Source: Scyliorhinus canicula (taxonomy: Eukaryota). From it: a stretch of DNA of 64,000 nt. Under the pieces are notes generated by a model. It made no database searches, was not told the DNA's origin, and was given only the letters and a program-made list of their open reading frames with translations. Where the stretch lies: contig NC_052157.1 in assembly GCF_902713615.1 (NCBI RefSeq), positions 58,292,325 through 58,356,324 of the forward strand, given 5' to 3'. The position numbers were made by a program, and so were the translations under genes. Below, in pieces: positions 4,550 through 60,208 of this stretch (its first letter is position 1; each line of letters begins with the position of its first letter).

Positions 4550-4915
4550 CAGAAACGTGAAGCTGGGTTACAGGATAATAGCTGTAGCGATTCCTGTTGT
4601 CAAATTCTATTCTGAAATAATAAGGTCCTGCATCTTGGCGTCTGATGTTGTTTATAATCAGGGAACAATCACCGTTGTGAAGATCTCCAGACAGGCGGGT
4701 CCGATGGCGGAACTGTGACAATTCTTGATTATGATCCTTGGAGTGAAATATGCTCGACTGTGTTCCCCATTCATCGTTATTATACCAGATTCCAACTCGG
4801 GGTTGGTTTTCCAAATGTGATGGATAACTGTAATGACATGGAATCTGTGCACACAAACCTTCCTGTGCTGTTACCTCCCGTGGAGTGTCACATTTCCACT
4901 CTTGTGACAGCACAA
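4550..4915 (-). CDS. Siglec-like receptor exon: V-set sialic-acid-binding Ig domain
   Basis: Acceptor tttgtctccacag| at 4916-4917 and donor |gtaagt at 4549; 366 nt, phase 1/1. LCAQIPCHYSYP, GDLHNGDCSLIINNIRRQDAGPYYFRIE and RYSY match Siglec V-set motifs, including the B-E strand cysteines and the F-strand Arg. Confidence 0.95.
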
Positions 4916-5326
4916 CTGTGGAGACAAACATCAATATTTAACACTGAATGGATTGCAGATCCACTAGACTCGATGTCCACCCCCTTCACCATTTGTGCCC
5001 AGTGGCTGCAGTGTGGACCATCTACAGGACACACAAGGAACTCTTTAATGTTTCACAACATATGAAAGAGAATCCTGGTCACAGGGCTGGACAAGTTCAT
5101 TCTACTCATGGTCATGGTCCTCAGGATGCTGTTTAGTGAAGCCAGTTTCACCCAAAACAGTGTCCACAAGACACACCAATTGAAATACATTCAGTGTGAT
5201 TTACAAAGCAGGAGAATGGATTAGGAGCACTCAGAACTCACATCATTATCACCATTGTGAATCACAGATTAGCCTCACCTTCCTGGATCCTCACTGTCTC
5301 AGATCGCAGTTCCTATTTTAATATAC

Positions 5327-9097: not shown

Positions 9098-10703
9098 GGT
9101 GGGGCAAAGTGAGCAAACAGCTGGTGTTTTGAGTTGTTTGTATCCTGTCCCTGCAATGATATTTCTCCTCAAAGGTGGACCTATATTGGAAAGGAGTTGT
9201 ACCATTGGTCAGAGAGTTTTACATCAACTCTTATCGCTGGTGCAGAAGGTCATGAGATACACAAACAAAGTGCCTCTAGCTTGAGCTGTGCATGTGGTGA
9301 AGGTGTCTCTGTGTTGGGTTCATGACCTTCACAGATGGTCTCACTGTGCTTTGGTTGAAATTGAACTGGGCCCCACACGAAATGCTGACACCAGAAACTT
9401 CTTGTTCCCTGTTCTTCTCAAACATCCATGACTTCCGCACAAATTTGAAGAGTTGCTGATCAAAAATTAAAAACACCAAATCATGTGATCGTACAGAGAG
9501 GGAGGCCAGTCGATCCATCGTGTCTGTGCTGGCTCTTTGAAAGATCTGTCTAATTATTCCCACATCCCCCAACTCCATAGCCTAGAAAATGTTTTGCCAA
9601 AAAATATTTAACAAATCCCCTTTTGAAAGTCCTGATTGAATCTGTTTCCAGCATTGTTTCTGGTAGAACCGATGTCAATCCTGCTGTCACTCAGGGAATC
9701 AGTGTACATCAGATGGCACAGGGGTGAGGGGTCAATGGGACTTGGTGTGGGTTTGTCCACTGGGTCACTGCTAAATTGGTTCCCAATCAGAGCACATTAA
9801 GAATGATCCTTTACAAAGACTATTAGTATCCATAAATATGTCTGAACTGACGATGGTATTACCTTGGAGAAGAGACAGGAGGAAGTAAGATTTCCCGATC
9901 ATTGTCCAATCTCTGATATTTCATCAGCTTCTCACTCTCAAGCTCTGAAAGAGAATGTAGTTAATGAGACCTCACTCTTGTCCGACAGCTCTCGAGAGAT
10001 CAGAACTGTTTTTAGACGATGACTTCACATACTAATTTGATTGTAAGTGGCATTCAGGAAGAAGAGCAATGAAGGACGACTTGCATTTAATAACAATAAT
10101 CGTTTATTGTCACAAGTAGGCTTCAATGACGTTACTGTGAAAAGCCCCCAGTCACCACATTCCACCACCTGTTCGGGGAGGCCCTTTCACCACCAAAGGA
10201 TATCCTAAATCTCATGTCTCAACATTTCCTTCGGCCCTTAAACAAGAAAGATGTTCTGTACGAAACACATGAAACTCACAACCAGTTCTCAATAATAAGT
10301 AAAAATCTTTCAAGGGATCAATCATTAGAATCTGTATTTATAAAGTCACGACATCAACAAATGACAATATTGATCATGGAAGTGAATTCCAATCATTATG
10401 TTACTTACCTGGGATTTATCTAACTGCTCGCCTGTGGATTAACTGCCGGTACGCTCTTCTTGGGCTGAACAAACTCTTCCTTGTGCTGCTTGCTCTGTGT
10501 ATTTAATTTTTAAATGTTGTTATGTCATTGTGAATCCAAATGGGGGTGGGGCAAAGTGAGCAAACAGCTGGTGTTTTGAGTTGTTTGTGTCCTGTCCCTG
10601 CAACGATATTTCTGCTCAAAGGTGGACCTATATTGGCAAGGAGCTTGTACCATTGGTCAGAGAGTTTTACATCCACTCTTATCGCTGATGCAGAAGGCCA
10701 TGG
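9098..10703. repeat. ~160-bp direct repeat pair (9098-9255 and 10545-10703) flanking the leader exon
   Basis: GGTGGGGCAAAGTGAGCAAACAGCTGGTGTTTTGAGTTGTTTGT...GCAGAAGG.CATG is present twice with few mismatches. Confidence 0.9.
9863..9902 (-). CDS. Siglec-like receptor leader (signal peptide) exon MIGKSYFLLSLLQ
   Basis: ATG at 9902-9900 (ACAATG context); donor CAAG|gtaata at 9862; upstream acceptor ctctttcag| gives exon start 9944. A phase-1 splice to 4915 yields MIGKSYFLLSLLQVVLS-QEW, a plausible signal peptide. Confidence 0.8.
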
Positions 10704-10764
10704 GACTGTGATACTACTCCAGAGATATAAAACTGTTCAACATCCTCAGTGACTTTGCTGAAGG

Positions 10765-11310
10765 AGCACAACACTGTCGGAAAGTCAATACTGAGGGCCC
10801 GCTGCGCTGTCGTAGGGTCAGTACTGAGGGAGTGCAGCACTGTCAGAGGGTCAGTACTGAGGGAGCGCTGCATTGTTGGAGGGTCAGTACTGAGGGAGTG
10901 CAGCACTGTCAGAGGGTCAGTACTGAGGGAGTGCTGCACTGTCAGAGGGTCAGTACTGAGGGAGTGCTGTACTGTCAGAGGGTCAGTACTGAGGGAGTGC
11001 TGCACTGTCGGAGGGTCAGTACTGAGGGAGTGCTGCATTGTAGGAGGGTCAGTACTGAGGGAGTGCAGCACTGTCAGAGGGTCAGTACTGAGGGAGTGCA
11101 GCACTGTCAGAGGGTCAGTACTATGGGAGTGCTGCACTGTCAGAGGGTCAGTACTGAGGGAGTGCTGCACTGTCAGAGGGTCAGTACTGAGGGAGTGCTG
11201 CACTGTCAGAGGGTCAGTACTGAGGGAGTGCTGCACTGTCAGAGAGTCAGTACTATGGGAGTGCTGCACTGTCGGTGGGTCAGTACTAAAGTAGTGCTGC
11301 ACCATTGGAG
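10765..11310 (+). repeat. 33-bp minisatellite array
   Basis: Same unit as 1935-2330, ~16 copies. Confidence 0.95.
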
Positions 11311-12882
11311 AATGTTATAGCTGAGGTACCAATTAGGCTTCCATAACCGTGGAAAAATTCTGAAAGTCACAATCCAAAGCTATCAGCACAGTGAAGAGTG
11401 AAATTTGATCATTATCAGAGCTTGACTATTTGAACAACTTGTGAAGAAAACTTTTCTTCTCAACTTCTCTTAACTAAATCCTGATTTAAATCAGCAGCTG
11501 TTATTCTGATGATCTTACTCACTGTGTCAGTGTGTCAGTGTGTGGTTAGTAACTGGAACCTATTTTCACTATTGTGCAGCCACAACAGTTTCAGTCTGGG
11601 TCACCTCACCTGCACATTCTGTTCCCTTCGAATTCTGCCCCAATATCTCCTTCTATCCCCTTCTCTCCTGCTCCCCTTACCTTCTCTCTCTGCACCACCT
11701 TCTCTCTGTTTCCCTCTCCCATCATCACCCATTCTCTCTGTCTCTCTTTTTTTCTCATTCTTCCTCAATATAAATCTCCGCTTCTCTCTGTATCATTCAC
11801 TCTCTCTCTCCTCCTCTCCTTCCTCCCTCTCTCTCTGAATCACTCCCTTTTTGCTCCTCCAAGAGTCAGTGTCTCTGTCACTCCTTCTCCCTCACTCCTC
11901 CTTGTTTTCTTATCTATCTCTCTCTGGCTCTATTTTTGCCCCCCTATTGTCTGTGTATCTTTCACTCTCTCTTTCCCAGTTTCCTGCTCGTCTTCTCCTG
12001 TCATTTTCTCTGTTCCACCCTCTCTCACTCCCTCCTACCCTATTTCTCTCTCTCTGGTTACCGAGACGCCTGCCACTGGAAACCCATTATTGACTCTATG
12101 CAAACCCCTCATCATTTTGAACGTCTCAATTCAATCTCCTCCCCAACATTCTCTGCTGTAAGGGAAACAATACCAGCTTCTCCCAGTCTCTCCTCATTAA
12201 CCGGGGTCCCGCATCCCTGGGAGCCATTCCAGTAAATCTCTTCCGTACCCTCTCCAAGGCCCTGACATCCTTCCTGTAGTGTGAAACGCCCAGAGTTGGA
12301 CACAGTTCTGCAGCTGGAACTGAACCATGGGGAGAAAGAGAAAGAGACAGTAAAGAAGAGATGGTGACAGAGGCACAATGGAAAGATGGAGAGAGATGGA
12401 AACAGAGACAGGCTGATAGACAGAGAGACAGAGAAGAAAACAGTAAAATGATTATCGGCAATATGAAGGGCCTATCTATTAATTCATAAAACCATAGAAT
12501 CTTACAGCACCAGAGAAGGCCATTCGGCCCATCTAACCAGTGCCAGCTCTTTGAAAGATCTATTCAGCAAGTCTCAACTCTCCCATTCCCACTCTTTCCC
12601 CCCATATTCCGGCTATATTTTCCTCTTCCAGTACCCCTTTTGAAAGTTCCTGCTGAATCTGCTTCCTCCGCCCTTTCAGGCAGCACCTTCCAGATCACAA
12701 CAACTCGCTGTGTGTGAAATAAAAATTCTCTTCATTTCCCCCCCCGGTTATTTTCCCGATTCTCTTCAATCTGTGCCCCCTCTGGTTACCGAGCCTCCTG
12801 ACGCTGGGAAGCACATTCTCCTTATCCACTCTATTTTGCACAATTGTATCAATTGAAGCTAAACTGTGGGTTTGTCACCTAC

Positions 12883-17059: not shown

Positions 17060-17855
17060 CCAGCTACATGCGATGAGGACTGTCAGAGGATACAGCAGGA
17101 TTTAGATCGTTTGGAGACTTGGGCGGAGAGGTGGCAGATGGAGTTTAATCCTGACAAATGTGAGGTAATGCATTTTGGAAGGTCTAATGCAGGTAGGAAA
17201 TATACAGTGAATGGTAGAACTCTAAAGAGTATTGAAAGTCAGTGAGATCTAGGTGGACAGGTCCACAGGTCACTGAAAGGGGCAACACAGGTGGAGAAGG
17301 TAGTCAAGAAGGCATACGGCATGCTTGCCTTCATTGGCCGGGGCATTGAGTATAAGAATTGGCAAGTCATGTTGCAGCTGTATAGAACCTTAGTTAGGCC
17401 ACACTTGGAATACAGTGTTCAATTCTGGTCGCCACACTACCAGAAGGATGTGGAGGCTTTAGAGAGGGTGCAGAAGAGATTTACCAGGATATTGCCTGGT
17501 ATGGAGAGCAGTAGCTATGAGGAGCAGTTGAATAACTGCTTTCCCCAGCGTAGAGGGGTCAATTATGAGGGGGCAGAGGTTTAAGGTGCGAGGGGCAAGG
17601 TTTAGAGTGGATGTACGAGGCAAGTTTTTTACACAGAGGGTAGTTGGTGCCTGGAACTCGCTGTCAGAGGAGGTGGTGAAAGCAGGGGCGATAATGACAT
17701 TTAAGGGGCATCTTGACAAATACGTGAATAGGATGGGAATAGAGGGATACGGACCCAGGAAGTGTAGAAGATTGTAGTTTAGTTGGGCAGCATGATCGGC
17801 ACGGGCTTGGAGGGCTGAAGGGCCTGTTCCTGTGCTGTACTTTTCTTTGTTCTTG
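17060..17855 (+). mobile_element. CR1 LINE 3' portion
   Basis: LYRTLVRPHLEYSVQFWSPH, ERVQKRFTR, FFTQRVVGAWN; tail GGGCCTGTTCCTGTGCTGTAC(TTTGTTC)n. Confidence 0.9.
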
Positions 17856-27574: not shown

Positions 27575-28858
27575 CCTTATTCCGCTGGTCAGTACTGAAG
27601 GTGCACTCCATTTTCAAAGGGTCCATGCTGAGGGAGCACCACTCATTCAGAAGATCAATACTGAGGCAATGCCGCTTTTACAGAGGGACAGTACTGAGGG
27701 ACCGCTCAACTATCAGAGGGTTAGCACTGAGGGAGTGCTGCACTGTCAGATGGTTAGTACTAAGACAGTGATGCACTGTCAGAGTATCTACTGAGGGAGT
27801 GCTGTACTGTCAGAGGGTCAGTACTGAGGGAGTGCTGTACTGTCAGAGGGTCAGTACTGAGGGAGTGCTGCACTGTCAGTGGGTCAGTACTGAGGGAGTG
27901 CTGTACTGTCAGAGGGTCAGTACTGAGGGAGTGCTGCACTGTCAGAGTGGCAGTACTGAGGGAGTGCTGCACTGTCGAAGGGTCAGTACTGAGGGAGTGC
28001 TGCAGTGTCAGAGAGTCAGTACTGAGGGAATGCTGCACTGTCAGAGGGTCAGTACTGAGGGAGTGCTGCACTGTCAGAGGGTCAGTACTGAGGGAGTGCT
28101 GCACTGTCAGAGGGTCAGTACTGAGGGAGTGCTGCACTGTCAGAGGGTCAGTAATGAATGAGTGCTGCACTGTCAGAGGGTCAGTACTGAGGGAGTGCTG
28201 CACTGTCAGAGGGTCAGTACTGAGTGAGTGCTGCACTGTCAGAGGGTCAGTACTGAGGGGGTGCTGCACTGTCAGAGGGTCAGTACTGAGGGAGCACAGC
28301 TGTTTTATCACTGGGCTAATCGCTGGCTTTGAAGGAAGACCAAGGCAAGCTGGCAGCACGGTTCGATTCCCGTAACAGCCTCCCCGAACAGGCGCCAGAA
28401 TGTGGCAACGAGCGACTTTTCACAGTAACTTCATTTGAAGCCTACTCGTGACAATAAGCGATTTTCATTTCCTTTCAGCAATGTCGGTAAGTCAGTGTTG
28501 ATGGCAAACTGCATAATTGGAGGGTCAGTATTAAGAGAGCGCTGTACTGTCAGAGGGTCAGTACTGAGGGAGTGCTGCACTGTCAGCGGGTCGGTACTGA
28601 GGGAGTGCTGCACTGTCGGAGGGTCAGTATTGAGGGAGTGCTGCACTGTCAGAGGGTCAGTACTGAGGGAGTGCTGCACTGTCGGATGGTCAGTATTGAG
28701 AAGTGCTGCACTGTCAGAGGGTCAGTACTGAGGGAGTGCTGCATTGTCAGAGGGTCAGCACTGAGGGAGTGCTGCACTGTCAGAGGGTCAGTACTGAGGG
28801 AGTGCTGCACTGTCGGATGGTCAGTATTGAGAAGTGCTGCACTGTTAGAAGATCAGTA
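27575..28858 (+). repeat. 33-bp minisatellite arrays (27575-28285, 28505-28858) separated by a short SINE (~28297-28470)
   Basis: Same 33-bp unit; the SINE matches the 13141 family. Confidence 0.93.
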
Positions 28859-28859
28859 C

Positions 28860-30165
28860 TATAAGACATAGGAGCAGAATTAGGCAACTCGGCCCATCGA
28901 GCCTGCTCCGCCATTCAATCATGGCTGATATTTTCTTATCCCCATTCTCCTGCCTTCACCCCATAACTCCTGATCCCCTTATTAATCAAGAACCTATCTA
29001 TCTCAGTCTTAAAGACACTTAGTGAATTAGCCTCCACAGCCTTCTGCGGCAAAGAGTTCCACAGATTCACCACCCTCTTGGCTGAACAAATTCCTCCTCA
29101 TCTCTGTTTTAAAGGATCATCCCTTTAGTCTGGGATGGTGTCTTCTGGTTCTAGTTTTTCCTACAAGTGGAAACATCACATCCACTCTATCTAGGCCTTG
29201 CAGTATCTTGTAAGTTTCAATAAGATGCCCTCTCATCCTTCTAAACTCCAACGAGTACAGACCCAGAGTCCTGAAACGTTCCTCATATGACAAGTTCTTC
29301 ATTCCAGGGATCATTCTTCTGAACCTCCTCTGGACCCTTTCCAAGGCATGCACATCCTTCCTTAGATACGGTGCCCAAAACTGCTCACAATAGTCCACAT
29401 GTGGTCTGACCAGAACTTTATACAGCCTCAGAAGTACATCCCTGGTCTTTTATTCTAGCCCTCTTGACATGAATGCTAACATTCCATTTGCCTTCTTAAC
29501 TGCCAACTGAACCTACACATTAACCTTAAGAGAATCGTGAACAAGGACTCTCAAGTCCCTTTGTGCTTCTGATCTCCAAAGCATTTCCTCATTTAGAAAA
29601 TAGTCTATACCTAAATTCCTCCTTCCAAAATACATAACCTCACACTTTTCCAAATTGTATTTAATTTGCCACTTCATCACCCACTCTCTTAGCTTGTCCA
29701 CGTCCTTCTGCAGCTCCCTTGCTTCCTCAATACTACCTGTCCCTCTACAGACCCTTGTATCATCTGCAAATTTAGCAACAGTGCCTTCAGTACCTTCTTC
29801 CAGATCATTAATGTATATTGTGAAAAGTTATGGTCCCAGCACAGACCCCTGAGGCACATCACTAGTCATCGGCTGCCATCCTGAAAAAGACCCCTTTATT
29901 CCCACTCTCTGCCTTCTGCCAGTCAGCCAATCCTCTATCCATGCCAGGATCTTACCCTTAATACCATTGACTTTTAACTTATTTAACAGTCTCCTATGCG
30001 GCACCTTGTCAAAGGCCTTCTGGAAATCTAAATAAATCACGTCCACTGGTTCTCCTTTGTCTAACTTCCTTGTTGCCTCCTCAAAGAACTCAAACAGATT
30101 TTCAGACACAACCTCCCTTTGACAAAGCCGTGCTGACTCAGTCCTATTTTACCATGCACTTCCAA
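28860..30165 (-). mobile_element. CR1 LINE 3' portion
   Basis: [22 protein letters not shown] and EQFWAPYLRKD motifs; tail ATAAGACATAGGAGCAGAATTAGG. Confidence 0.9.
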
Positions 30166-30385
30166 GTACTGGGGGAGTGCTGCACTGTCAGAGGGTCAGT
30201 ACTGAGGGAGACCTGTGCTTTCAGAGGGTCAGTATTGAGGAAGTGTTGCACTCTCGAAGGATCAGTATTGAGGGATTTCTGCACTGTCAGAGATTCAGTA
30301 TTGACGGAGTGCTGCACTGTCAGAGGGTCAGTCCTGAGCGAGTGCTGCACTGTCAGAGGGTCAGTACTGAGGGAGTGCTGCACTC
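30165..30385 (+). repeat. 33-bp minisatellite array (degenerate)
   Basis: Same unit. Confidence 0.9.
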
Positions 30386-31059
30386 TCTTATAAACATAGT
30401 ATGCACACACAAGATGGCACCTGCCTCCAGTATCTTCACAACATCATGTCCACACGTAGAATACCTCTTCCTGTATCAGAATGGGAAGGCTGTGGTGACA
30501 TAGCACCACCACTGTCAGGAAGGTGTAACAACAACGTGACATGTTAACATGGGACATTTCCATTGTCAAGGTTTGCACTGGAATTGATATCATGGGGAAA
30601 ATATGACAACAGCAATATTTGAGCCAAGAGCTTTGCATCAAAATAAGAAGTTTAACATGTAAGTATCCAGAGAACAGCCTGAGCATTTCAATCAATTGTG
30701 TAAATAAATGTAATATTGTTCATAACCCAAATGCTTCATGAAAAATGTGCAGCATTCAGAAAGCACATTCTGATTTGATTACAAAGTTCGGTGACGTCAC
30801 ATTTCTGTTCATTGCTATTCGACCCTGTTGGCTGCACACAGTGAGACAATGCCTTGGTTATGATGTTTCCACACAGCGGGACTGGGGAGCACCAGGGACC
30901 AGGAATAGTTTCAGCTTGCTGAGGAGGAGAAGGAGAATCTCTGGTTCCAGGTTCCTCTCCGTACATTAAGAAGCAGCATGCCGATGTTTCACTGCCCTCT
31001 GTCTGCTGATGATGCTCTGCTTGTAAATTGCTATTTATGCTGATAGAAACAATAAGCTT

Positions 31060-31690
31060 TTCAGAAACAGACGGACAGTATTAAAACAGGGAGGTTATGC
31101 TGAACATTTACAAAGCTCTGGTTAGGTCACAGCTAGAGTATTCTGTCCAATTCTGGTCACCACACATTCAGAAGGATGTGAGCATCCTCGAGAGGGGGCA
31201 GAGGAAGATTTACCAGAGTGGTTCCAAGGATGAGGGATTTTAGCTCCAAGGCTTGAGTTGGAGAAACTGGGGTTGGTTTTCGTGGAGAAAAGAAGATTGA
31301 GGGGCGATTTGATCGAGGTGGACAAGATGATGACAGGTTTAGATAGATAAAGACGGCTGTTGCCCTTAGCTCATGGCAGAAGTACTGGGGGGGGGGGGGG
31401 GGGGGGCACAGAGTTAATGTTTTGGGCGAAGGGGTGTGTGAGATTGAACTTTTTTTACACAGCGTGTGGTAATGACATGGAATCTGCTGCCCACGATGGG
31501 GGTGGAAGTGGAGACGATGAACGATATCAAAAGGAATTTGGACAGAGACTTGAGGGAAATTAACTTGTCGAGATATGTGGATAGAGCAGGGGGCATGGGA
31601 CTGACTGGATTCATCTACACAAAGAGATAGCATGGACTGGATGGGCTGAATGGCCACCTTCGGTGCCGGAATGACTCGATGACACTAAAG
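31060..31690 (+). mobile_element. CR1 LINE 3' fragment
   Basis: YKALVR..LEY..QFWSPH-like segment; tail GGGCTGAATGGCCACCTTCGGTGCCG. Confidence 0.8.
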
Positions 31691-31811
31691 TAATTCTAAC
31701 CATGAACATTGACTGGTTTCATTGTAACTTAACCCAACACCACACGGTATTTGGCTGCACTGACAGATGAGATTGTTACTGCACAAAGCTTTAAACAGAC
31801 TGAGGACTTCC

Positions 31812-31930
31812 TTAAACTGTTCGTCTCTCCCAGACACAAATCCCAGCGACAGTGATAACGACAACTACAATGAATATCACAGCTCGTATTCCCAGGATCA
31901 GGATCACGTCCAGATTCTCTCCTCCACTGT
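31812..31930 (-). CDS. Transmembrane + stop exon of an Ig-type receptor: (x)SGGENLDVILILGIRAVIFIVVVVITVAGICVWERRTV*; Arg in TM, 5-aa tail
   Basis: Acceptor tttctgtgtgttttctag| at 31931-31932; phase 1; 26-residue hydrophobic run followed by ERR; TAA at 31814-31812. It lies in non-repeat sequence. The link to a Siglec-like gene is inferred from strand, phase and neighbourhood. Confidence 0.75.
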
Positions 31931-32149
31931 CTAGAAAACACACAGAAATAAATCATCATTTACTCTCTGCTTTCAATCTCTCACTCTGGCTGAACAATCC
32001 AACTGAATATCACTGCGACATTTGCTGTAATGTCGATCCATCCACTGGGATTAAATGGATCCTGAATGTTTTCAATGTAAACACTCTCAGAGTGGACAAT
32101 CTGAACTTTCACCTTAGTGTGGAACATTGTGAGAATGGTTCATTGTCCA

Positions 32150-35100
32150 CAAGTAGAATACCTCCAAACCACACACGCCGGCAGTCTGCTCGCGCCATAC
32201 CCTGCAGCACATGCCAACACCCATACCCCCCCCCCCCCCCCCCCCATGGCCGGGTGCCCTGCATACCCAGGCCACTAGCTGCCCATCCCCTGTGTTGCCT
32301 GTGCCTGATTGCCTCAGAGTGCGCATTTCCTGTAGCCTCTTCCCCCCCCCCCCCCCCCCACCCCTCTCCAGGAGAAGGCAGCGCAAAACTGCAGAGGGAG
32401 GGAGAGCAGACGGAGGGAGTCCGCCGGACCTGCGGCCCTTCACCACTGTGGAACGACGGGCATTGGTCCTGGTTGGTGGGCCTGGAGAGTGGGCAGTCAC
32501 CGAGGCGGAGGTCAGCATCGGGGAACCAAGTAAGCCCCAGCTGAGTTGTGGTGTCCCTACGGCACACGTGGCATCACCCGCACACTGCTTCCCCCCACCC
32601 CAGCACCCCATACTTCCACATCACCCCTCTAGCACGCAACCCCAGCACCCCACATCTCCACACCATTCCTCCACCACCCCACCCAGCACCCCACATCTCC
32701 ACACCATTCCTCCACCACCCCACCCAGCACCCCACACCTCCACCCCACCCAGCACCCCACCCCACACCTCCACACCATTCCTCCACCACCCCTCCCAGCA
32801 CCCCACACCTCCACCCCACCCAGCACCCCACCCCGCATCTCCACACCATTCCTCCACCACCCCACCCAGGACCCCACACCTCCACACCATTCCTCCACCA
32901 CCCCTCCCAGCACCCCACATCTCCACACCATTCCTCCACCACCCCACCCCCGCACCCCACAGCTCCACCCCACTCCTAGCCCCACTCCTTTCCCACCCCC
33001 ACACCCCACACCTCCACCTCCTCCACACCACCCCTCCACCACCCCACCCCACACCCCACACCTCCACCCCACCTCCTCCACACCACCCCTCCACCTCCCT
33101 ACCCCCACACCGCACACCTCCACCCCGCTCCTCTCCCACCCCCGCACCCCACACCTCCACCCACCTCCTCCACACCACCCCTCCACCACCCCACGCCAGC
33201 ACCCCACCTCCTCCACACCACCCCTCCACCTCCCCACCCCCGCACCCCACCTCCTCCACACCACCCCTCCACCACCCCACGCCAGCACCCCACCTCCTCC
33301 ACCCCACTCCTCCACCCCACTCCTCCACCACCCCACCCCCACACCTCCACCCCACCTCCTCCACACCACCCCTCCACCTCCCTACCCCCACACCCCACCA
33401 CCTCCACCCAACTCCTCCACCTCCCCACCCCAGCACCCGACTACCTCCACACCATCCCTCCACCTCCCTACCCCCGCACCCGACTACCTCCACACCACCC
33501 CTCCACCTCCCTACCCCTGCACCCCACCTCCTCCACCCCAATCCTCCACCTCCCTACCCCCGCGCCCCACACCTCCACCCCACTCCTCCACCTCCCTACC
33601 CCAGCACCCCACCTCCTCCACACCACCCCTCCACCTGCCTACCCCCACACTCCACCTCCTCCACACCACCCCTCCACCTCCCCACCCCAGCACCCCACAC
33701 CTCCATCCCACTCCTCCACCTCCCCACCCCTCCACCCTACCTCCTCCACCCCACACCTCCACCTCCCTACCCCCGCGCCCCACACCTCCACCCCACTCCT
33801 CCACCTCCCTACCCCCGCACCTCACCTCCTCCACCCCACTCCTCCACCTCCCTACCCCAGCACCCCACCTCCTCCACACCACCCCTCCACCTGCCTGCTC
33901 CCACACCCCACTTCCTCCATACCACCCCTCCACATCCCTACCCCCACACCCCACAGCTCCACCCCACCCCTCCACCTCCCCACCCCAGCACCCCACACAT
34001 CCACCCCACTCCTCCACCTCCCCACCCCAGCACCCCACAGCTCCACCCCACCCCTCCACCTCCCTACCCCCGCACCCCACCTCCTCCACCCCACCCCTCC
34101 ACCTCCCTACCCCCACACCCGACTACCTCCACACCACCCCTCCACCTCCCTACCCCCGCACCCCACCCCCTCCACCCCACTCCTCCACCTCCCTACCCCC
34201 GACACTCCACCTCCTCCACACCACCCCTCCACCTCCCTACCCCCACATCCCACACCTCCATCCCACTCTTCCACATCCCTACCCCCACACCCGACTACCT
34301 CCACACCACACCTCCACCTCCCTACCCCCGCACCCCCCCTCCACCCCACCCCTCCACCACCCCACCCCAGCACCCCATACTTCCACATCACTCCTCCAGC
34401 AAGCAACCCCAGCCCCCCACCTCCTCCACACCACCTCTCCACCTCCCCACCCCCGCACCCCACCTCCTCTACACCACCCCTCCACCTCCCTACCCCCACA
34501 CCCCACCTCCTCCACACCACCCCTCCCCCTCCCCACCCCAACAGCCCACCACCTCCACACGTGCAACGGTATGTCAGGTGGAGGTGGGAACCCCCGAAGG
34601 AGCAGATGGTAAGAGGGCGGGTCGACCCTAGGGACTAGCTGCCGTCCAGACCCGTCTCGTGCTTCTGGAGACAGCGGTCATATCGATGCTGGAGCTGTAG
34701 TCACAGAGCCAATGACTCCATGACTATTCAGTGCCTGCAGGGACAGGAGGTGGTGCCAACAATGCAATGCCACCCAGGACAACACTAAATGGGGGGCGTC
34801 CCCGGTGGAGGTCTTGGGGGTGAAAGCATCGGCTATGGGACAGGATGCCTGGGCCACTCTGTGCGGGTGGCGGGCAAGGCACATACCAGAGCAGCCCTGT
34901 CACATGCAGCCATGTACCAGGGCCACCTGGACATTGCAGCGGCGCTCCAGAGCTTGGAGCAGTCACAGCAGGTCATGGCTGTGGGTGTTGATGGCATTGC
35001 TCGGGCACTGGCTGACCTGAGCCATTCACAGAGGGATGTGGCACTCGTATTGTGCTCTAAGGCCCGGAGCATTGAGACTCTGTTTGAGACAAGTGCGGCC

Positions 35101-35999: not shown

Positions 36000-37031
36000 T
36001 AAAGTGCTGTGGGAATAAGAATCTTGCATGGAGTAATACAGTACAGAAGAGGCCCTTCAGTCCGAGTCTGCACTGACACAACTACACCAGTCCCACTTTC
36101 TAGCACTTGGCGCATAACCCCGGATATTACGACATTTCAGGTGTCCATCCAAGTACTTTGTAACGGTTGTGAGGTTTCCCGACTCTACTACCCTCCCGGG
36201 CAGTGCATTCCAGACTCCCACCACCAAAAAATGTTTCCTCAAATCTCGAAACTTCCTGCCTCTCACTTTAAAATTATATTCCCTTGTTGCTGACCCTTCA
36301 ACTGAAGGGAACAGCTGCTGCAATCCTCCCTGTCCATACCCATATAATCTAAGACTCCTCAATCCGGTCCCCCTCTCAGTCTCCCCTGCTCTAAAGAAAT
36401 CAACCAGAGCTTATCCAGCTTCACTTCAAACCTAAAATGCTCCAGCCTAGGCAACATCCTGGTGAATCTCCTCTGCATGCTCTCCAGTGCAATTACTTCC
36501 TTCCTGTAGTAAGGCATCCAGAACTTCCCACAGTTTTTACAGCTGTGGCCTCCCCAAAGTTTTGTGCAGCTCCATCATAACCTCCCTGTTCTTATAATCC
36601 ATGCCACAACTGATAACCGCAAACGTCATGTATGCCTTCTGAACTACCCCATTAACCTGCCTTCAGGGATTTGTGGACAAGCACCCCAAATCCCCCTGTT
36701 CCTCTGAGCTTCTGAGTGTCCTGCCATTCATTGAGTACTCCCTTATCGTGTCCCTCCTGCCAAAGTACATCAACTCAAACTTTTTCAGGGTTAAATTCCA
36801 CCTGCAACTGATCTGTCTACCTGACTAAACTGTCTATATCTTGCTGCAAACTAAGACCTTCTTCCTCACTGTTATGTTCCAGTACTCTGACAATAATTGA
36901 GTCGGCACACCAAAGAACATCTCGTTCTAGACTAGTCAAATGTATTATTGCATAACAAACTGTGGGTTGGAAACCAATCTTAAGAAACTGGAACAATCAC
37001 AAATACAACTATCCATGACAACTTCTCCCAC

Positions 37032-41829: not shown

Positions 41830-44800
41830 TATTCGCTTCCTTCCTCCAAGTCATTCATACATATACATAAAAAAACAGTTTAGAAAATAAATAATTAGGG
41901 TTTAAAAACCAAATTAAAAACTAATTAAATAAAATAGACATCATGAGAGCAGGTGATGTGTTTCTGCAAGATTTGGGAGCTGGTGGATCCCATTGTGGTT
42001 CTGTAGTAAGTGTTGGTTGCTTGAGGAACTCCAAATCAAAGTTGATGAGCTGGAGTCTGAGCTTCGGACACTATGACAGGGGGAGGGAGAGAGTTACCTG
42101 GACATGTATTCCAGGAAACAGTCACACCCCTGAGAATAGCTAACTTAAATTCAGCCAGTGATCAAGGACAGGAGGGTGTGGCTGCGAGTGAGGCAGGTAG
42201 AGGGATCCAGGAGGTAGGGTTGCAGGAGACTCAGACTTTATCCCTGTCCAACAGGTTTAAGCATCTTTCTCCCTTCTCTGTGAACAGGGTTCAGAATCCT
42301 GAAGGTTGTGTTGCGTACGTGGTGCTCGGGTTCAGGATATCTGATCTGGGCTGCAGAGGAACTTGGAGTGGGAGGGTTTAGATCCAGTTTCCGTGGTCCA
42401 TGTTGGTACCAACGATATAGGTAGAACAAGGACAGAGGCTCTGCTAAGCGGGTATGAACAGCTAGGAGCTAAATTAAAAAGCAGAACCAAAAAGATAATA
42501 ATCTCTGGATTACTACCTGAGTCACGAGCTAATTAGCACAGGTTCAATACGATTAAGGAGGTAAATGCGTGGCTCAAAGATTGGTGTGAAATTAGCACCA
42601 GTACGGAGGAAGGGGGGCCTGTTCCGAAGGGACGGTTTTATCTGAATCACGCTGGGACCAGAGTCCTAGAGAATTGCGTAACTAAGGTTGTAGATATGAC
42701 TTTGAACTAAATATAGGGTGGGCGGGGGGAGGGTTCAGTTGTCGGGGAAAGAGGAAAACCCAATTTAAAGGATAAGAGAAGAGTGCAGGTTAGCAATGTG
42801 GTGGATGGTGACCAGAAAATAAAAGTGAGGGATAGAATAGGTGAATGTCTTTATGCACCAAGAAATGAAAGAAGAGTAGGGAAATCTAACATAAAACAAA
42901 TTTTAAAGCTTTGTACCTAAATGCAATAAGCATTCGTAACAAACTTAATGTACTAATGGCGCAAGTAGAAACAAAAGGTTATGACTTGGTGGGTTTACTG
43001 AAACATGGTTACAAGGAGACCAGGGCTGGGAATTGAATATCCAAGGGTACGCACCATTTCGGAAAGATAGGTTTAAAGGAAAAGGAGGTGGCGTAGCCCT
43101 GCTGGTGAGGAAAGTCCATGATGTGGAGATGCCGGTGTTGGACTGGGGTGAGCACAGTAAGAAGCCTTCAGTTTCTTCAGGCTTCACTAGCTTTCGGAGT
43201 ACTGCTCCTTCCTCAGGTGAATCATTTACCTGAGTAAGGAGCAGTGCTCCGAAAGCGAATGATTCGAAACAAACCTGTTGGACTTTAACCTGGTGTTGTA
43301 AGGCTTCTTATGGTGAGGAAAGGGATCAGCGATGTAATGAGAAATGACATTAGCACTGGAAATCAAGCTGTCGAATCAGTCTGGGTAGATATAAGGAATA
43401 ACAAAGGGAAGAAGTCCTTGCTATGAGTAATCTATAGGTCCCCAAACAGCAGTTCTACAGTGGGGCACAGTATAAACCAGAAAAGTCTGGGGGCTTGCAA
43501 GAAAGATACGGCAATAATAATGGGTGATTTTGATGTGCACATAGACTGGAGGAATCAAACTGGCAAGGGTAGCCTGGGGGCAGAGTTCATTGAATGCATC
43601 AGAGATTGTTTCCTGGAGCAATATGTTGGGGAACCAACCAAGGAGGAGGCAACTCTCGATTTGGTATTCTGTAATGAAGAGGGATTAATTAATGACCTCA
43701 TAGTTAATGATCCACTGGGGAATAGTGACCATAGTATGGTAGAATTCAAGATTCATTTTGGGGGTAAGAGTCCCACACTTGCATTCTGGAATTAAAAAAA
43801 GGAAATGACATAGGCTTGAGGACAGATTTGGTCCATATAGACTGGGCAGGAAGGCTACAAGGTCGGACAACTGATGATCAGTGGCAGTTGTTCAAGGAGA
43901 TACTCAATTCCTCACAACTAAAATATATCCCAGTGAGGAAGAAAGATGGGAAGAGGGGTAAAAACATCCATGGCTAAACAAGGAGGTCAAGGACATTATA
44001 AAGACTAAAACTAAGTTATATCATATTGCAAAGGACAGTGGCAGGCTGGAAGATTGGGAAACGATTATAAATAAACAGCATGGTAGCATGGTGGTTAGCA
44101 TAAATGCTTCACAGCTCCAGGGTCCCAGGTTCGACTCCCGGCTGGGTCACTGTCTGTGTGGAGTCTACACGTCCTCCCCGTATGTGCGTGGGTTTCCTCC
44201 GGGTGCTCCGGTTTCCTCCCACAGTCCAAAGATGTGCGGGTTAGGTGAATTGGCCATGCTAAATTGCCCGTAGTGTCCTAAAAAGTAAGGTTAAGGGGCG
44301 GTTGTTGGGTTACGGGTATAGGGTGGATACGTGGGTTTGAGTAGGGTGATCATTGCTCGGCACAACATTGAGGGCCGAAGGGCCTGTTCTGTGCTGTACT
44401 GTTCTATGTTCTATGTTCTAAAAAGGATACTAAAAAAGTAATTAAAAGAGCAAAGGTAAATATGAAAAAAAACCTTGCACAGAATATCAAAAAGGATGCC
44501 AACGTTTCTACAGGTACATAAAAGAGAGTCACTAAGGTGAATGTTGGCTCCTTGAAAGATGAAACTAGTGAGTTAATAGTGTGGAACACAGAAATGGCAG
44601 AGATGCTAAATCAATACTTTGCCTCAGTTTTCATGGTGGAGGACAGCACAGTGGCACAGTTGTTAGTGCTGCTCCTTCACAGCGGCAAGGTCCCAGGTTC
44701 CATCCTGGCTCTGGTTCACTGTCCGTGTGGAGTTTGCACATCTTCCTTGTGTTTGCATGGGTTTCGCCCTACCACCCAAAGATGTGCAGGGTATGTGGGT

Positions 44801-47869: not shown

Positions 47870-50800
47870 ATTACTGGTCAGTATTGAGGGAGTGATGCAC
47901 AGTCTGAGGGTCAATGCTGAGGGGAGGCTGTACTGTGGGATGTTAAGTTCTGGGCGGCGCTGCAGTGTCAGATGGCCAGAACTGAGGGAGTGCTACACTG
48001 TTTGAGGGTCAGCACTCAGAGAGCATTGCACCGTTTGAGGGTCAGTACAGAGGAAGTGCTTTACTGTTGAAGAGTCAGCAATGAGGGAGCACTGCACTGT
48101 CAGAGTTTCAGAACTGAGGGAGTGTTGAACTGTTGGAGGGTCAGTACTGAGGAAGTGCTGAATTGTTTGATGATCAGCACTGAGAGAGTGCTGCACTGTT
48201 GGAGGGTCAGTACTAGCTGGTGCTGCACTTTCGGAGGATCAGTACTGAGGGAGTGCAACACTGTCAGAGGTGTAACAATATATACATTGTATGGGAGAGA
48301 AAGTGTTATCAGTTTAATGTTATTACTTCTTACCATTAGAGGTTGATCAAGTGAAGTCACATATATATCACGTGATGACCCTTGTTTCTGGGAGAAGGTG
48401 TTTAGGTGTGAGATAGAGTAGTTCTGTATTCGAAATTTCTGCCATTAGAGTTTAACATAGTTCATTTTAGCAACCTTACACTTAGGAATACGTTTGAATC
48501 TTTAGAAATGTTCCTAAATCAACTTTGTTAATTTACTTAACTTGATGTTCTTCGTTCAACACTATGCATTCAAGACATCCAGACAAACAAAACAGAGAAC
48601 ATCACATGCTGCCAGGTTGTGGTTCCTAAAGTACAATAGTAAGGTTGAGATAGAAAGAAAAATTCTCCGTTCGAAAAAAAACCTGTGAAGATCAAAATAA
48701 AAAAATCTCAACCAGACTCCGATCGGAACAACTTTGTGGAAGCCAGCAGCGTCAAAAAAGAAACTGCCAGGTTGCAGCTTCATGTCAGGTTTGCAGACTC
48801 CAAAGCAATTCAAGACATCAGTCAAACTAATTATAAATTGGCAAAATTTGAAACAACAGTTTGAACTTTATATCTTAGTCTCAGACCTCAAAGTGGCCAG
48901 TGATCACTGTCGGAGGGTCAGTGCTGAGTGAGTGCTATACAGTCAGAGGGTCAGTACTGAAGGAGTGCTGCACTGTCGGAGGGTCAGTACTGAGGGAGAG
49001 CTGCACTGTCAGAGGGTCAGTACTGAGGGTGTGCTGCACTGTCAGAGGGTCAGTACTGAGGCAGTGCTGCACTGTCAGAGGGTCAGTACTGAGGGAGTGC
49101 TGCACTGTCAGAGGGTCAGTACTGAGTGAGTGCTACACAGTCAGAGGGTCAGTACTGAGGGAGAGCTGCACTGTCAGAGGGTCAGTACTGAGTGAGTGCT
49201 GCACTGTCAGAGGGTCAGTACTGAGGGAGTGCTGCACTCTCGGACGGTCAGTACTGAGGGTGTGTTGCACTCTCAGAGGATATGTACTGAGGAGTGCTGC
49301 TCTGTAAAGGAGTCAAAATTGAAGGAGTGCTGCACTGTTCGAGGGTCTTAACTCGGTAAGTGCTGCAATGTCAGAGGGTCAGTCCTGAGGAAGTGTTGCA
49401 CTGTTGGAGGGCCATTACTGAGGGAGTGCTACACTGTCAGGTGCTCAGTGATGGGAGAGCTCTGCTATATCGGAGGGTCAGTCCTGAGGAAGTGTTGCAC
49501 TCTCAGAGGGTCAGTACTGAGGAAGCGCTGGACTGTCGGAAAGTCAGTACTGAGGGAGTGCTGAACTGACAGAGAGTCAGTCATAAAGAAATGCTACCAT
49601 CTCGGAGGTTTAGTACTGAGGGAGCGCTGCACTGTCCGAGAGTCAGTACTCAGAAAGTGCTCTACTGTCAGAGGATATATACAAAGGGAGTGCTGCACTG
49701 CCAGAGGTTGAGCATTGGGGAGCACTGCACATTTGGAGGGTCAGTACTGAGAGAGCGCTGCACTGTCAAGGATCAATACTGAGGGATTGCTGCATTATCA
49801 GAGTGTCAGAACTGAGGGAGTGCTACACTGTTGGAGAGTCAGCACTGAGGGAGTGCTGCACTGTTGGAGGGTCAGCACTGAGGGAGTGCTGCACTGTTGG
49901 AGGGTTGGTAGTGATTTAGCATTGCACTGTTATGGGGTTAGTACTGATGGAGCGTTGCATTGTCAGAGAGTCAGTTCTGAGGGAGTGTTGCACTGTGAGA
50001 TGATCAGTTTTAAGGGGGTGCTGCACTGTCAGAGGGTCAGTACTGAGGGAGTGCTGTACTCTTGGAGGGTCTGTCCTGAAGTTGTACTGAGCTGCGGTAT
50101 GGTCAGTGCTGAGGGAGTATTGAACTCTCAGAGGGTCAGCACTGATGGAACACTCACCTGGCTGAGGGTCAGTAACTGAGTGAATGCTGCTCCAGCAGAG
50201 TGTCACTGAGGGAGTGATGCACTGCCAGAGAGTCAGTGCTGTGGGAGTACTGTATTGTGATGTTCAGTACTGAAGGTGGGCTGCACTGGGCTGTGGTCAA
50301 TACTGCATGAACGATGCACTGTTGGAGGGTCAGTACTCAGGGAGTGCTACACTGCCAGAGGGTCAGTACTGAGGGAATGCTACACTGCCAGAGGGTCAGT
50401 ACTGAGGGAATGCTGCACTGTCAGAGGGTCAGTACTGAGGGAGTGCTACACTGCCAGAGGGTCAGTACTGAGGGAGTGCAACACTGCCAGAGGGTCAGTA
50501 CTGAGGGAGTGCTGCACTGTTAGAGGGTCAGTACTGAGGGAGTTCTACACTGCCAGAGGGTCAGTACTGAGGGAGTGCTGCACTGTCAGAGGGTCAGTAC
50601 TGAGGGAGTGCTGCACTGTCAGAGGGTCAGTACTGAGGGAGTGCTGCACTGTCAGAGGGTCAGTACTGAGAGAGTGCTGCACTGTCAGAGGGTCAGTACT
50701 GAGGGCGTGCTGCACTGTCAGAGGGTCAGTACTGAGGGAATGCTGCACTGTCAGAGGGTCAGTACTGAGGGAGTGCTGCACTGTCAGAGGGTCAGTACTG

Positions 50801-51160
50801 AGGGAGTGCAACACTGCCAGAGGGTCAGTACTGAGGGAGTGCTGCACTGTTAGAGGGTCAGTACTGAGGGAGTTCTACACTGCCAGAGGGTCAGTACTGA
50901 GGGAGTGCTGCACTGTCAGAGGGTCAGTACAGAGGGAGTGCTGCACTGTCAGAGAGTCAGTACTGAGGGAGTGCTACACTGCCAGAGGGTCAGTGTTGAG
51001 GGAGTGCTGCACTGTCAGAGGGTCAGTGCTGAGGGAGCAGTACATTGTCAGAGGGTCGGTACTGAGGGAGTGCTGCACTGTCAGAGAGTCAGTGCTGAGG
51101 GAGTGCCGCACTGCCAGAGGGTCAGTGCTGAGGGAGCAGTACATTGTCAGAGGGTCAGCG
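47870..51160 (+). repeat. 33-bp minisatellite arrays (47870-48270; 48903-51160, with a degenerate middle)
   Basis: Same unit; the largest array in the window. Confidence 0.95.
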
Positions 51161-58160: not shown

Positions 58161-58794
58161 CTCAATTCCGGTCTCTTGAGAATCGCCCAACTCCCATCAC
58201 TCCACTATTGGTGGCCGTGCCTTCAGCTGTCTGGGGTCCCGAGCTCCAGAATTCCCTCCTTAAACCTCTCCACCTCACTCGACATCCACATCAATCTTGG
58301 ACAGAGTTTCAGTATGTTCAGAGGAGGAATCTGCGACATTGTGAAGTGATGTGAACAGTGCAGATAATATCGACAGGGAAGAGGTTGCGTTGAATATTAG
58401 ATCTTAAGGAGGCCATTCAGCCCTTTCCTTCTTTTAACATTTCATTTACATGTTTGCTGATGTGTATCTTGACACAATGTCCCCACCTTCATCCCATATC
58501 TCTTAATATCATGATCCAACAAAACTCCATGCATCCCAGATTTAATATGAACAATTTGGCAGAGTCTCGATTTCCGTTTGGGAAGAATGCCCCAGATATC
58601 TCTCATCCTTTGAGTTTTGAAATGTTTCCTAATTTCACCCCGGAAGGGTCCACCTCTCATTTTTAGACTCTGTCCCCAAGTCCGAGATTCCCTCAATCAG
58701 CGGAATACTTTATCTCTGTTGACCGTATCTGTTGGAGCAATAGAAACTGACATAAGATATTGCACAGGGAGACCATTCAGCTCATCGTGTAAAT

Positions 58795-59660
58795 GTTGGG
58801 AGGGAGTGCTGCACTGCCGGAGGGTCAGCACTGAGGGAGTGCTGCACTGTCAGAGGGTCAGTACTGAGGGAGTGCTGCATTGTCAGAGGGTCAGCACTGA
58901 GGGAGTGCTGCACTGTCAGAGGGTCAGTACTGAGGGAGTGCTGCACTGTCGGAGGGTCAGTACTGAGGGAGTACTGCACTGTCAGAGTGTCAGTACTGAG
59001 GCAGTGCTGCACTTTCAGAGGGTCAGTACTGAGGGAGTGCTGCACTGTCAGAGGGTCAGTACTGAGGGAGTGCTGCATTGTCAGAGGGTCAGTACTGAGG
59101 GAGTGCAGCACTGTCAGAGGGTCAGTACTGAGGAAGTGCTGCACTGTCAGAGGGTCTGTACTGAGGGAGTGCTGCACTGTCAGAGGGTCAGTACTGAGGG
59201 AGTGCTGCACTGCCAGAGGATCAGTACTGAGGGAGTGCTGCACTGTCAGAGGGTCAGTACTGAGGGAGTGCTGCACTGTCAGAGGGTCAGTACTGAGGGA
59301 GTACTGCACTGTCAGAGGGTCAGTACTGAGGGAGTGCGGCACTGTCAGAGGGTCAGTACTGAGGGAGTGCGGCACTGTCAGAGGGTTAGTACTGAGGGAG
59401 CGCTGCACTGTCAGAGAGTCAGTATTGAGGGAGTGCTGTACTGTCAGAGGGTCAGTACTGAGTGAGTGCTGCACTGTCAGAGGGTCAGTACTGAGGGAGT
59501 GCTGCACTGTCTGAGGGCCAGTACTGAGGGAGCGTTGCATTGTCAGTGGGTCAGTACTGAGGGAACGTTGCATGGTTGGAGGGTCAGTACTGAGGGAGTA
59601 CTGCACTGTCAGAGGGTCAATACTGAGGGAGTGCTGCACTGTTGGAGGGTCAGTGCTGTT
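58795..59660 (+). repeat. 33-bp minisatellite array, ~26 copies
   Basis: Same unit. Confidence 0.95.
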
Positions 59661-60208
59661 ATGTTCTTGTACAGAGACATTACTGACTCGCCGTACTAAA
59701 TAACACCTCGTTCAAGACTAGCAAAGGAACCGATAGAAATAGGTGAAATTGTGTCAGTTCCTTGGCAAAAGGTTGGGATAATCTTATTCTACCTTGATGG
59801 TAAAGAATATTTGGTAGTGGTAGGTTATTACTCAAATTATCCAGAGATAGCACAATGAGCACATTGTGTAATCATGCAGACCTGAGGTAGTAATGTTTGG
59901 TAATGGAATGTGCTCCAACAATAAAGAATGGCAGGAATTTGTGCAGCACTATGACTTTAGACAAGTAACATCAAGTCCATTATACTCGCAATCAAATAGC
60001 AAAGGAGAAAAAGGGGTTCAGATAGTCAAGCAATTACTGAAGAAGGCTGTGGACAAATCGAACATCTTTAATATGTGGTTTATCGCCAGCAGAAATGTTG
60101 AGGAATCGGAAACTACGAACAACTCAGCCATGCCGTACCAAGCAAAGGCTGAATGAGAAGATAACAAATAGAATCTCAGGAGAAACAAAAGGAATATTAT
60201 GACAAGTC

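Follow-up and report, generated by a model that had tools for sequence, protein, structure and literature searches.

Positions 31812-31930 on the minus strand of the window (the whole 64-kb stretch of Scyliorhinus canicula DNA that was analysed) are confirmed, from their sequence, to be a real exon, the last one in a gene of this shark's Siglec family. There is a good probability that this is the last coding exon (stalk, transmembrane (TM) segment, 5-residue tail and 3′UTR) of a Siglec gene of the CD33-related type, the gene most likely being one of 73 kb that ends, in one of its alternative forms, with this distal exon. The exon is already present in the public automatic annotation, where RefSeq models carry the exact peptide, and it adds one member to an already known receptor type, with no new principle.

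Read in phase 1, the exon gives (x)AC, then SGGENLDVILILGIRAVIFIVVVVITVAGICVWERRTV, then TAA at 31814-31812. It is composed of a short stalk, SGGENLD, a 26-residue TM helix, and the tail ERRTV with its stop. The hydrophobic stretch VILILGIRAVIFIVVVVITVAGICVW, 26 residues long, contains one Arg only, at position 8, and the 5 residues of the tail include no ITIM, ITSM or ITAM. An Arg in the membrane followed by a short tail devoid of ITIM had been claimed in the first-pass annotation; both are seen in the sequence, and the Arg is invariant in nine out of nine sequences compared, from four species. The splice acceptor (31931-31955, minus strand) is strong, with a 22-nt polypyrimidine tract, TTTATTTCTGTGTGTTTTCTAG, and a TAG placed directly before the exon start at 31930 (AG at 31932-31931). 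The region 31450-32200 is single-copy within the 64 kb. The tblastn search for paralogous TM exons, which had been named earlier as a check, returned none within the window, and tblastn and blastn across the window gave no second TM exon of the Arg type.

The protein family was recovered by a full HMMER scan with the V exon of the window, and two of its members had the TM peptide; further relatives were retrieved by word searches limited to the TM region. The peptide that follows the splice, 38 residues long, is identical, stop included, to the C-termini of two S. canicula RefSeq models: Siglec-14 isoform X2 (XP_038669862.1, 273 aa, V-C2-TM) and Siglec-13 (XP_038668956.1, 272 aa). Because of this 100% identity, the peptide is not a chance open reading frame. 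The earlier proposal of a phase-1 TM exon on the minus strand at this place is borne out by the sequence, the acceptor and the exact RefSeq C-terminus, and an RNA junction falls at 31930/31931 (see below). The codon that had been predicted across the splice (CAA T|AC = Tyr) also agrees with XP_038669862.1, which reads ...ERTLILTVQ-Y-SGGEN.

XP_038669862.1 is made of a leader, a V-set domain with the sialic-acid Arg, a C2-set domain and the TM segment. It matched V-set (3e-14), Ig_CD22 (1.5e-9) and C2-set_2 in Pfam, and its best PDB relatives were human Siglec-5 (E 3e-28), CD33, MAG, Siglec-10 and Siglec-8. Its YFFRIE aligned to YFFRVE of human Siglec-5, so that the strand-F sialic-acid Arg is kept. 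Judging from these alignments, the annotated protein has a Siglec-type V-set with the lectin Arg, and we infer that the exon of the window is tied to the exons encoding them. The RefSeq label “Siglec-14” is an automatic best-hit name and no demonstration of orthology.

The window has a Siglec gene of its own on the minus strand, with a leader at 9864-9902, a V exon containing YYFRIE at 4551-4916 and a C2-set exon at 2496-2795; the rest of the gene lies outside, past the first position of the window. Among the retrieved proteins, matches reached at most about 77% for its V exon and 85% for its C2 exon. The first-pass annotation had presented the TM exon as lying beside this Arg-intact Siglec. 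The two are indeed on the same strand, but the TM exon is 22 kb upstream of the leader and is therefore not an exon of that gene; as an anchor for the Siglec gene at 2.5-9.9 kb, it is ruled out by order and strand. Neither strand showed a V or a C2 exon between 31.9 and 64 kb in a hallmark scan, in a search of stop-free frames or when 158 proteins of the family were used as tblastn queries, and the partner exons should therefore lie beyond the high-coordinate end of the window. Besides a candidate terminal exon described below, this half of the window contains only LINE fragments, a Gypsy remnant, 33-bp minisatellites and a 1.9-kb C-rich array. The latter (32641-34560) is a minisatellite with periods of 13 and 43 and a GC content of 0.66, from which arises, on the plus strand, an 806-codon Pro/His/Thr-rich open frame that is almost certainly non-coding. 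The 33-bp minisatellite, CAGAGGGTCAGTACTGAGGGAGTGCTGCACTGT, translates as LSTDPLTVQHS repeats and forms arrays at 1951-2277, 10682-11314, 27681-28860, 30165-30384, 50548-50874 and 58785-59711.

Two annotated genes can be considered as owners of the exon. The Siglec-14 gene (XP_038669859.1/XP_038669862.1) spans 73,235 bp, and no other gene is listed inside it or within 10 kb. The Siglec-13 gene (XP_038668956.1) spans only 17,156 bp; a different, identical copy of the exon therefore belongs to Siglec-13. At 42332-42468, on the same strand as the TM exon and 10.5 kb upstream of it, lies a candidate alternative terminal exon without TM, which reads SPSCSYPLSRASVLVLPISLVPTWTTETGSKPSHSKFLCSPDQIS-stop behind a good acceptor, with its AG at 42470-42469. 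It is present once in the window, and its amino acids are 87% identical to those of the terminal exon of isoform X2 of S. torazame Siglec-14 (XP_072325009.1); of the V domains compared with that of S. canicula Siglec-14, the one of this S. torazame protein came closest (83%). On the resemblance of the terminal exons, the one at 42332-42468 is a candidate for the end of a soluble isoform of the same gene as the TM exon. Because of the 73-kb span, compared to the 17 kb of Siglec-13, and of this S. torazame-type terminal exon and V match, the TM exon probably belongs, as its distal 3′ exon, to Siglec-14 of S. canicula, an assignment that is indirect. Siglec-14 isoform X1 (XP_038669859.1/61.1) ends with ERRTVQGSPQSV, and therefore a second, near-identical TM exon exists somewhere. 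If the exon studied here is the distal 3′ exon of Siglec-14, the CAA-type TM exon of isoform X1 would sit upstream, outside the window. The exon may also be a third, unannotated copy.

RNA was mapped on positions 30390-32630, using two contig sets and two raw oligo-dT runs (X23, X24, X16, X28). In transcripts from close paralogues of the exon, this acceptor is joined to V or C2 exons of Siglec type, and no ITIM exon follows. In two runs, raw depth was 25-56 over 31665-31931 and zero over the intron side (31965-32189), and the first mate was almost always on the plus strand, as a stranded library should give when the RNA comes from the minus strand. From 31931, 38 and 79 raw reads, together with two contigs, continued as loose ends into sequence absent from the window. 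Their reverse complement reads ...YHPVTRLQVS followed by G|AC (Asp), i.e. the end of a Siglec V exon, comparable to the YYPVTQLHVS of the window's own V exon; the RNA V-end sequence itself was searched for in the window and is absent from it. Contigs of run X16 led from 31930 to the sequence that closes a C2-set exon, ...ERTLILTVE-T|AC (Tyr), which is 3 mismatches away from the C2 exon end of the window and has no other match there. The RNA junctions that had been suggested as a way to find the upstream exon thus break exactly at 31930/31931, onto Siglec V or C2 ends, in the RNA of close paralogues. Just upstream of the TM exon, a stop-free stretch on the minus strand (31984-32127) reads MFHTKVKVQIVHSESVYIENIQDPFNPSGWIDITANVAVIFSWIVQPE; its product is 81% identical to residues 638-685 of a merged S. 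torazame model, XP_072326181.1, and it matched no Pfam family and had no RNA depth in the mapped runs.

On the other side of the exon, RNA was collinear down to 31664 and matched again at 30737-31071. No canonical splice joint leaving the 3′ side of the exon was found in the mapped RNA. The only joint, 31071/31664, has non-canonical ends (CG..GG) and 96 letters replacing the interval, and is a difference of the paralogue, not an intron. Onward splicing to an ITIM tail, which would have contradicted the reading given in the first-pass annotation, was looked for and not found in this RNA, that of the paralogue, which continues into the 3′UTR. The probable 3′UTR of the terminal exon, 30737-31811 on the minus strand, is deduced from the expressed paralogue, the RNA of which matches 31664-31811 and 30737-31071. 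Within it, the segment of ~592 nt at 31072-31663 includes pieces of dispersed repeats similar to 17393-17487 and 36432-36596, and a G20 run on the plus strand (31387-31406) which is the inverted complement of a C20 run at 32226-32245.

The RNA is not demonstrably that of the window copy. Every read and contig differed from the window at 31703, 31706, 31709, 31712, 31807, 31814, 31822 and 31824, among other sites, and at the last four of these, the diagnostic sites, the letters were those of a paralogue in all reads and contigs of the four runs. All those covering 31814 carried a T on the plus strand, giving AAA (Lys) in place of TAA. RNA and window diverge by ~5% close to the exon and by ~12% in the far part of the UTR. 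Because of the consistent differences at the diagnostic sites, we assigned the RNA to a paralogue ~95% identical to the window copy. The tail of this expressed paralogue, ERQTVKGNPQSV, has 12 residues, none of them Tyr, and a Lys where the window copy stops; with the listed changes (at least those being in the exon), its C-terminus reads ...CVWERQTVKGNPQSV-stop. No S. canicula protein with the tail ERQTVKGNPQSV was retrieved among proteins of 136-1132 aa; the nearest relative is S. torazame XP_072326180.1. In the dominant RNA form of the paralogue, the end of the V exon is joined directly to the TM exon.

As for the window copy itself, each of ~19 RNA-like runs contained half or fewer of the words sampled from 31700-31935. 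Run X16 includes a contig of 53 nt that agrees with 31878-31930 letter for letter, at a depth of 17; the C2-end loose ends of the same run abut 31930 but are not linked to it. This contig is possibly a trace of RNA from the window copy, which may be weakly expressed or silent.

We aligned nine TM exon sequences from four sharks of two orders, S. canicula, S. torazame, Chiloscyllium punctatum and Rhincodon typus. Homologous terminal TM exons are found in S. torazame (XP_072326180.1, XP_072325011.1, XP_072326181.1), C. punctatum (XP_072409577.1) and R. typus (XP_048476508.1), and those of the other sharks are 74-95% identical to the exon of the window. Residues E4, L6, VILILGIRA (8-16, including the Arg, R15), IF, TVAG, CV and E34 are invariant in the nine exons. 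The conservation of the Arg, one of the conditions listed earlier, holds without change across the four species and both orders. The V domains of these proteins share only 57-83% identity. In the models of the other sharks the tail reads ER(R/Q)xVKG(S/N), which is the ancestral form. The residue at the position of the window TAA is K in S. torazame, bamboo shark and whale shark and Q in isoform X1, encoded by AAA or CAA. The TAA of the window copy is, by this comparison, a derived truncation, with a loss of 7 tail residues, none of them in a known motif.

The V-only TM architecture seen in the dominant RNA form is absent from the retrieved S. canicula proteins and present in one whale shark model (XP_048476508.1). 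We tentatively propose, as a reading that is possible but falls short of probable, that the Arg TM exon is an ancient and strongly constrained adaptor-docking cassette of galeomorph sharks (two orders), placed on quite different Siglec-type V domains, and used in catshark tissues mainly by direct V-to-TM splicing, which would give a V-only, TREM-like “mini-Siglec”.

The features expected of an adaptor-coupled activating receptor can be recognized in the sequence and in the RNA of the paralogue: a single conserved TM Arg, a short motif-free tail, and the absence of any later coding exon. Buried in the outer third of the TM helix, the Arg would pair with the Asp pair of a dimeric adaptor bearing ITAM or YxxM motifs, either of the FcR-gamma/zeta or of the DAP12/DAP10 type. 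If this pairing holds, binding of sialoglycans by the V domain would result in an activating rather than an inhibitory signal, and by analogy with known receptors we consider adaptor-coupled activation upon sialoglycan binding as the likeliest function. Every characterised receptor that combines a single basic TM residue with a short tail assembles with a dimeric adaptor through the Asp pair of the latter, and the Ig receptors CD89, NKp46 and NKp30, which are coupled to FcR-gamma/zeta, have their Arg near the top of the TM segment (Chem Rev 2026, PMC13107469). With these three, the catshark receptor would share a type I Ig-superfamily organisation, a single Arg in the outer TM and a short tail. 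In CD89 and NKp46, in contrast, the Arg is nearer the TM top and the ectodomain is of the Fc/NCR type, compared to a Siglec lectin here; since seven hydrophobic residues precede the Arg of the catshark exon, it lies deeper than that of CD89. The polar residues found one to two turns above the Arg are QNLIR in CD89 and ENLD in the catshark exon. An Arg at position 8 of 26 does not separate FcR-gamma/zeta from DAP12/DAP10.

The activating CD33-related Siglecs of mammals, i.e. human Siglec-14, as well as Siglec-16 and mouse Siglec-H, are coupled to DAP12. Features common to human Siglec-14 and its catshark counterpart are a V-set with the sialic-acid Arg followed by a C2-set, a single basic TM residue, a very short tail without ITIM, and a gene cluster also holding ITIM-bearing Siglecs. 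They differ in that the sequence of the catshark TM exon is shark-specific, with its Arg at residue 8 of 26. The RefSeq models of the other sharks share the TM exon and the invariant Arg behind V or C2 domains of Siglec type, but continue for 7 codons past the stop of the window copy; the whale shark model XP_048476508.1, made of V and TM only, resembles the dominant RNA form of the paralogue.

The copy in the window could itself be a silent or decaying duplicate, a relic of tandem duplication that gene prediction would have taken in only for its resemblance to expressed paralogues, the functional receptors being elsewhere in the cluster. We regard this as rather unlikely, though it deserves serious consideration: the window letters at 31807, 31814, 31822 and 31824 occur in no read or contig, at most half of the sampled words are found in RNA-like runs, the TAA is derived, ~592 nt of partly repetitive DNA occupy the 3′UTR where the expressed form has 96 nt, and upstream there is no Ig exon within 32 kb. 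Decay is, however, not apparent in the exon, whose reading frame and acceptor are undamaged, as are the TM and its Arg, and the early stop costs only 7 tail residues without known motif. Moreover, the 53-nt contig of run X16 corresponds to 31878-31930 at a depth of 17, the form ending in ERRTV-stop is found in two RefSeq models, and the read evidence comes from four runs of unknown tissue.

Another possibility concerns the function rather than the expression of the exon. The Arg-TM form might not signal through an adaptor, and be a decoy, a shed receptor or one controlled by retention, which would merely compete with inhibitory Siglecs for ligand. The very short tail would suit such a role, and the TM-less alternative terminal exon nearby suggests that non-signalling isoforms are made. 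Nevertheless we find it improbable, as the outer TM half, VILILGIRA-IF, does not vary from one shark order to the other, whereas identity between V domains falls to 57-66% or less, which points to a specific intramembrane partner, and as the characterised receptors with a single basic TM residue and a short tail all assemble with Asp-bearing dimers (PMC13107469). Finally, the exon lies among LINE fragments and minisatellites, far from the Ig exons of the window, as might a chance open frame in intergenic, repeat-rich DNA. This last explanation has practically no credit left: it is refuted by exact or near-exact matches to annotated proteins in four species and by RNA junctions at the predicted acceptor. 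Of these explanations, we prefer that of the last coding exon of a CD33-related-type Siglec gene, at the good probability given at the outset.

The first-pass annotation had further suggested that activating receptors of this type might be paired with inhibitory ones. Members of the family with a neutral TM segment, WT(I/L/V)GL(L/V/I)(T/M)AGI..., have tails of 87-109 residues, most of which contain an ITIM (e.g. LLYASI, LLYINV). One of them, S. canicula XP_038670873.1, has a neutral TM and an ITIM tail, and is on the same chromosome record. The idea therefore stands in so far as ITIM-bearing relatives exist in the family and on this record, but not in the sense of a near-identical twin among the proteins compared: the best values among retrieved proteins, between XP_038669862.1 and XP_038670873.1, are ~72% for V and 87% for C2. 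The catshark comparison is in this respect without the near-identical inhibitory partner of the Siglec-5/14 gene-conversion kind. A closer partner for the ligand-binding domain may exist.

A search for shark or cartilaginous-fish Siglecs and their adaptors found no dedicated paper in the literature searched. The practical gain from the window is modest, since the exon was already in the automatic annotation. More worthy of attention are the dominant V-to-TM transcript of the paralogue and the invariant outer TM half, which predicts a specific adaptor. Activating-type Siglecs, in which a lectin head is combined with a charged membrane anchor, are not limited to mammals: sharks have a conserved, multi-copy set of them, near ITIM-bearing relatives. 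The origin of activating and inhibitory Siglec signalling thereby becomes testable in cartilaginous fish.
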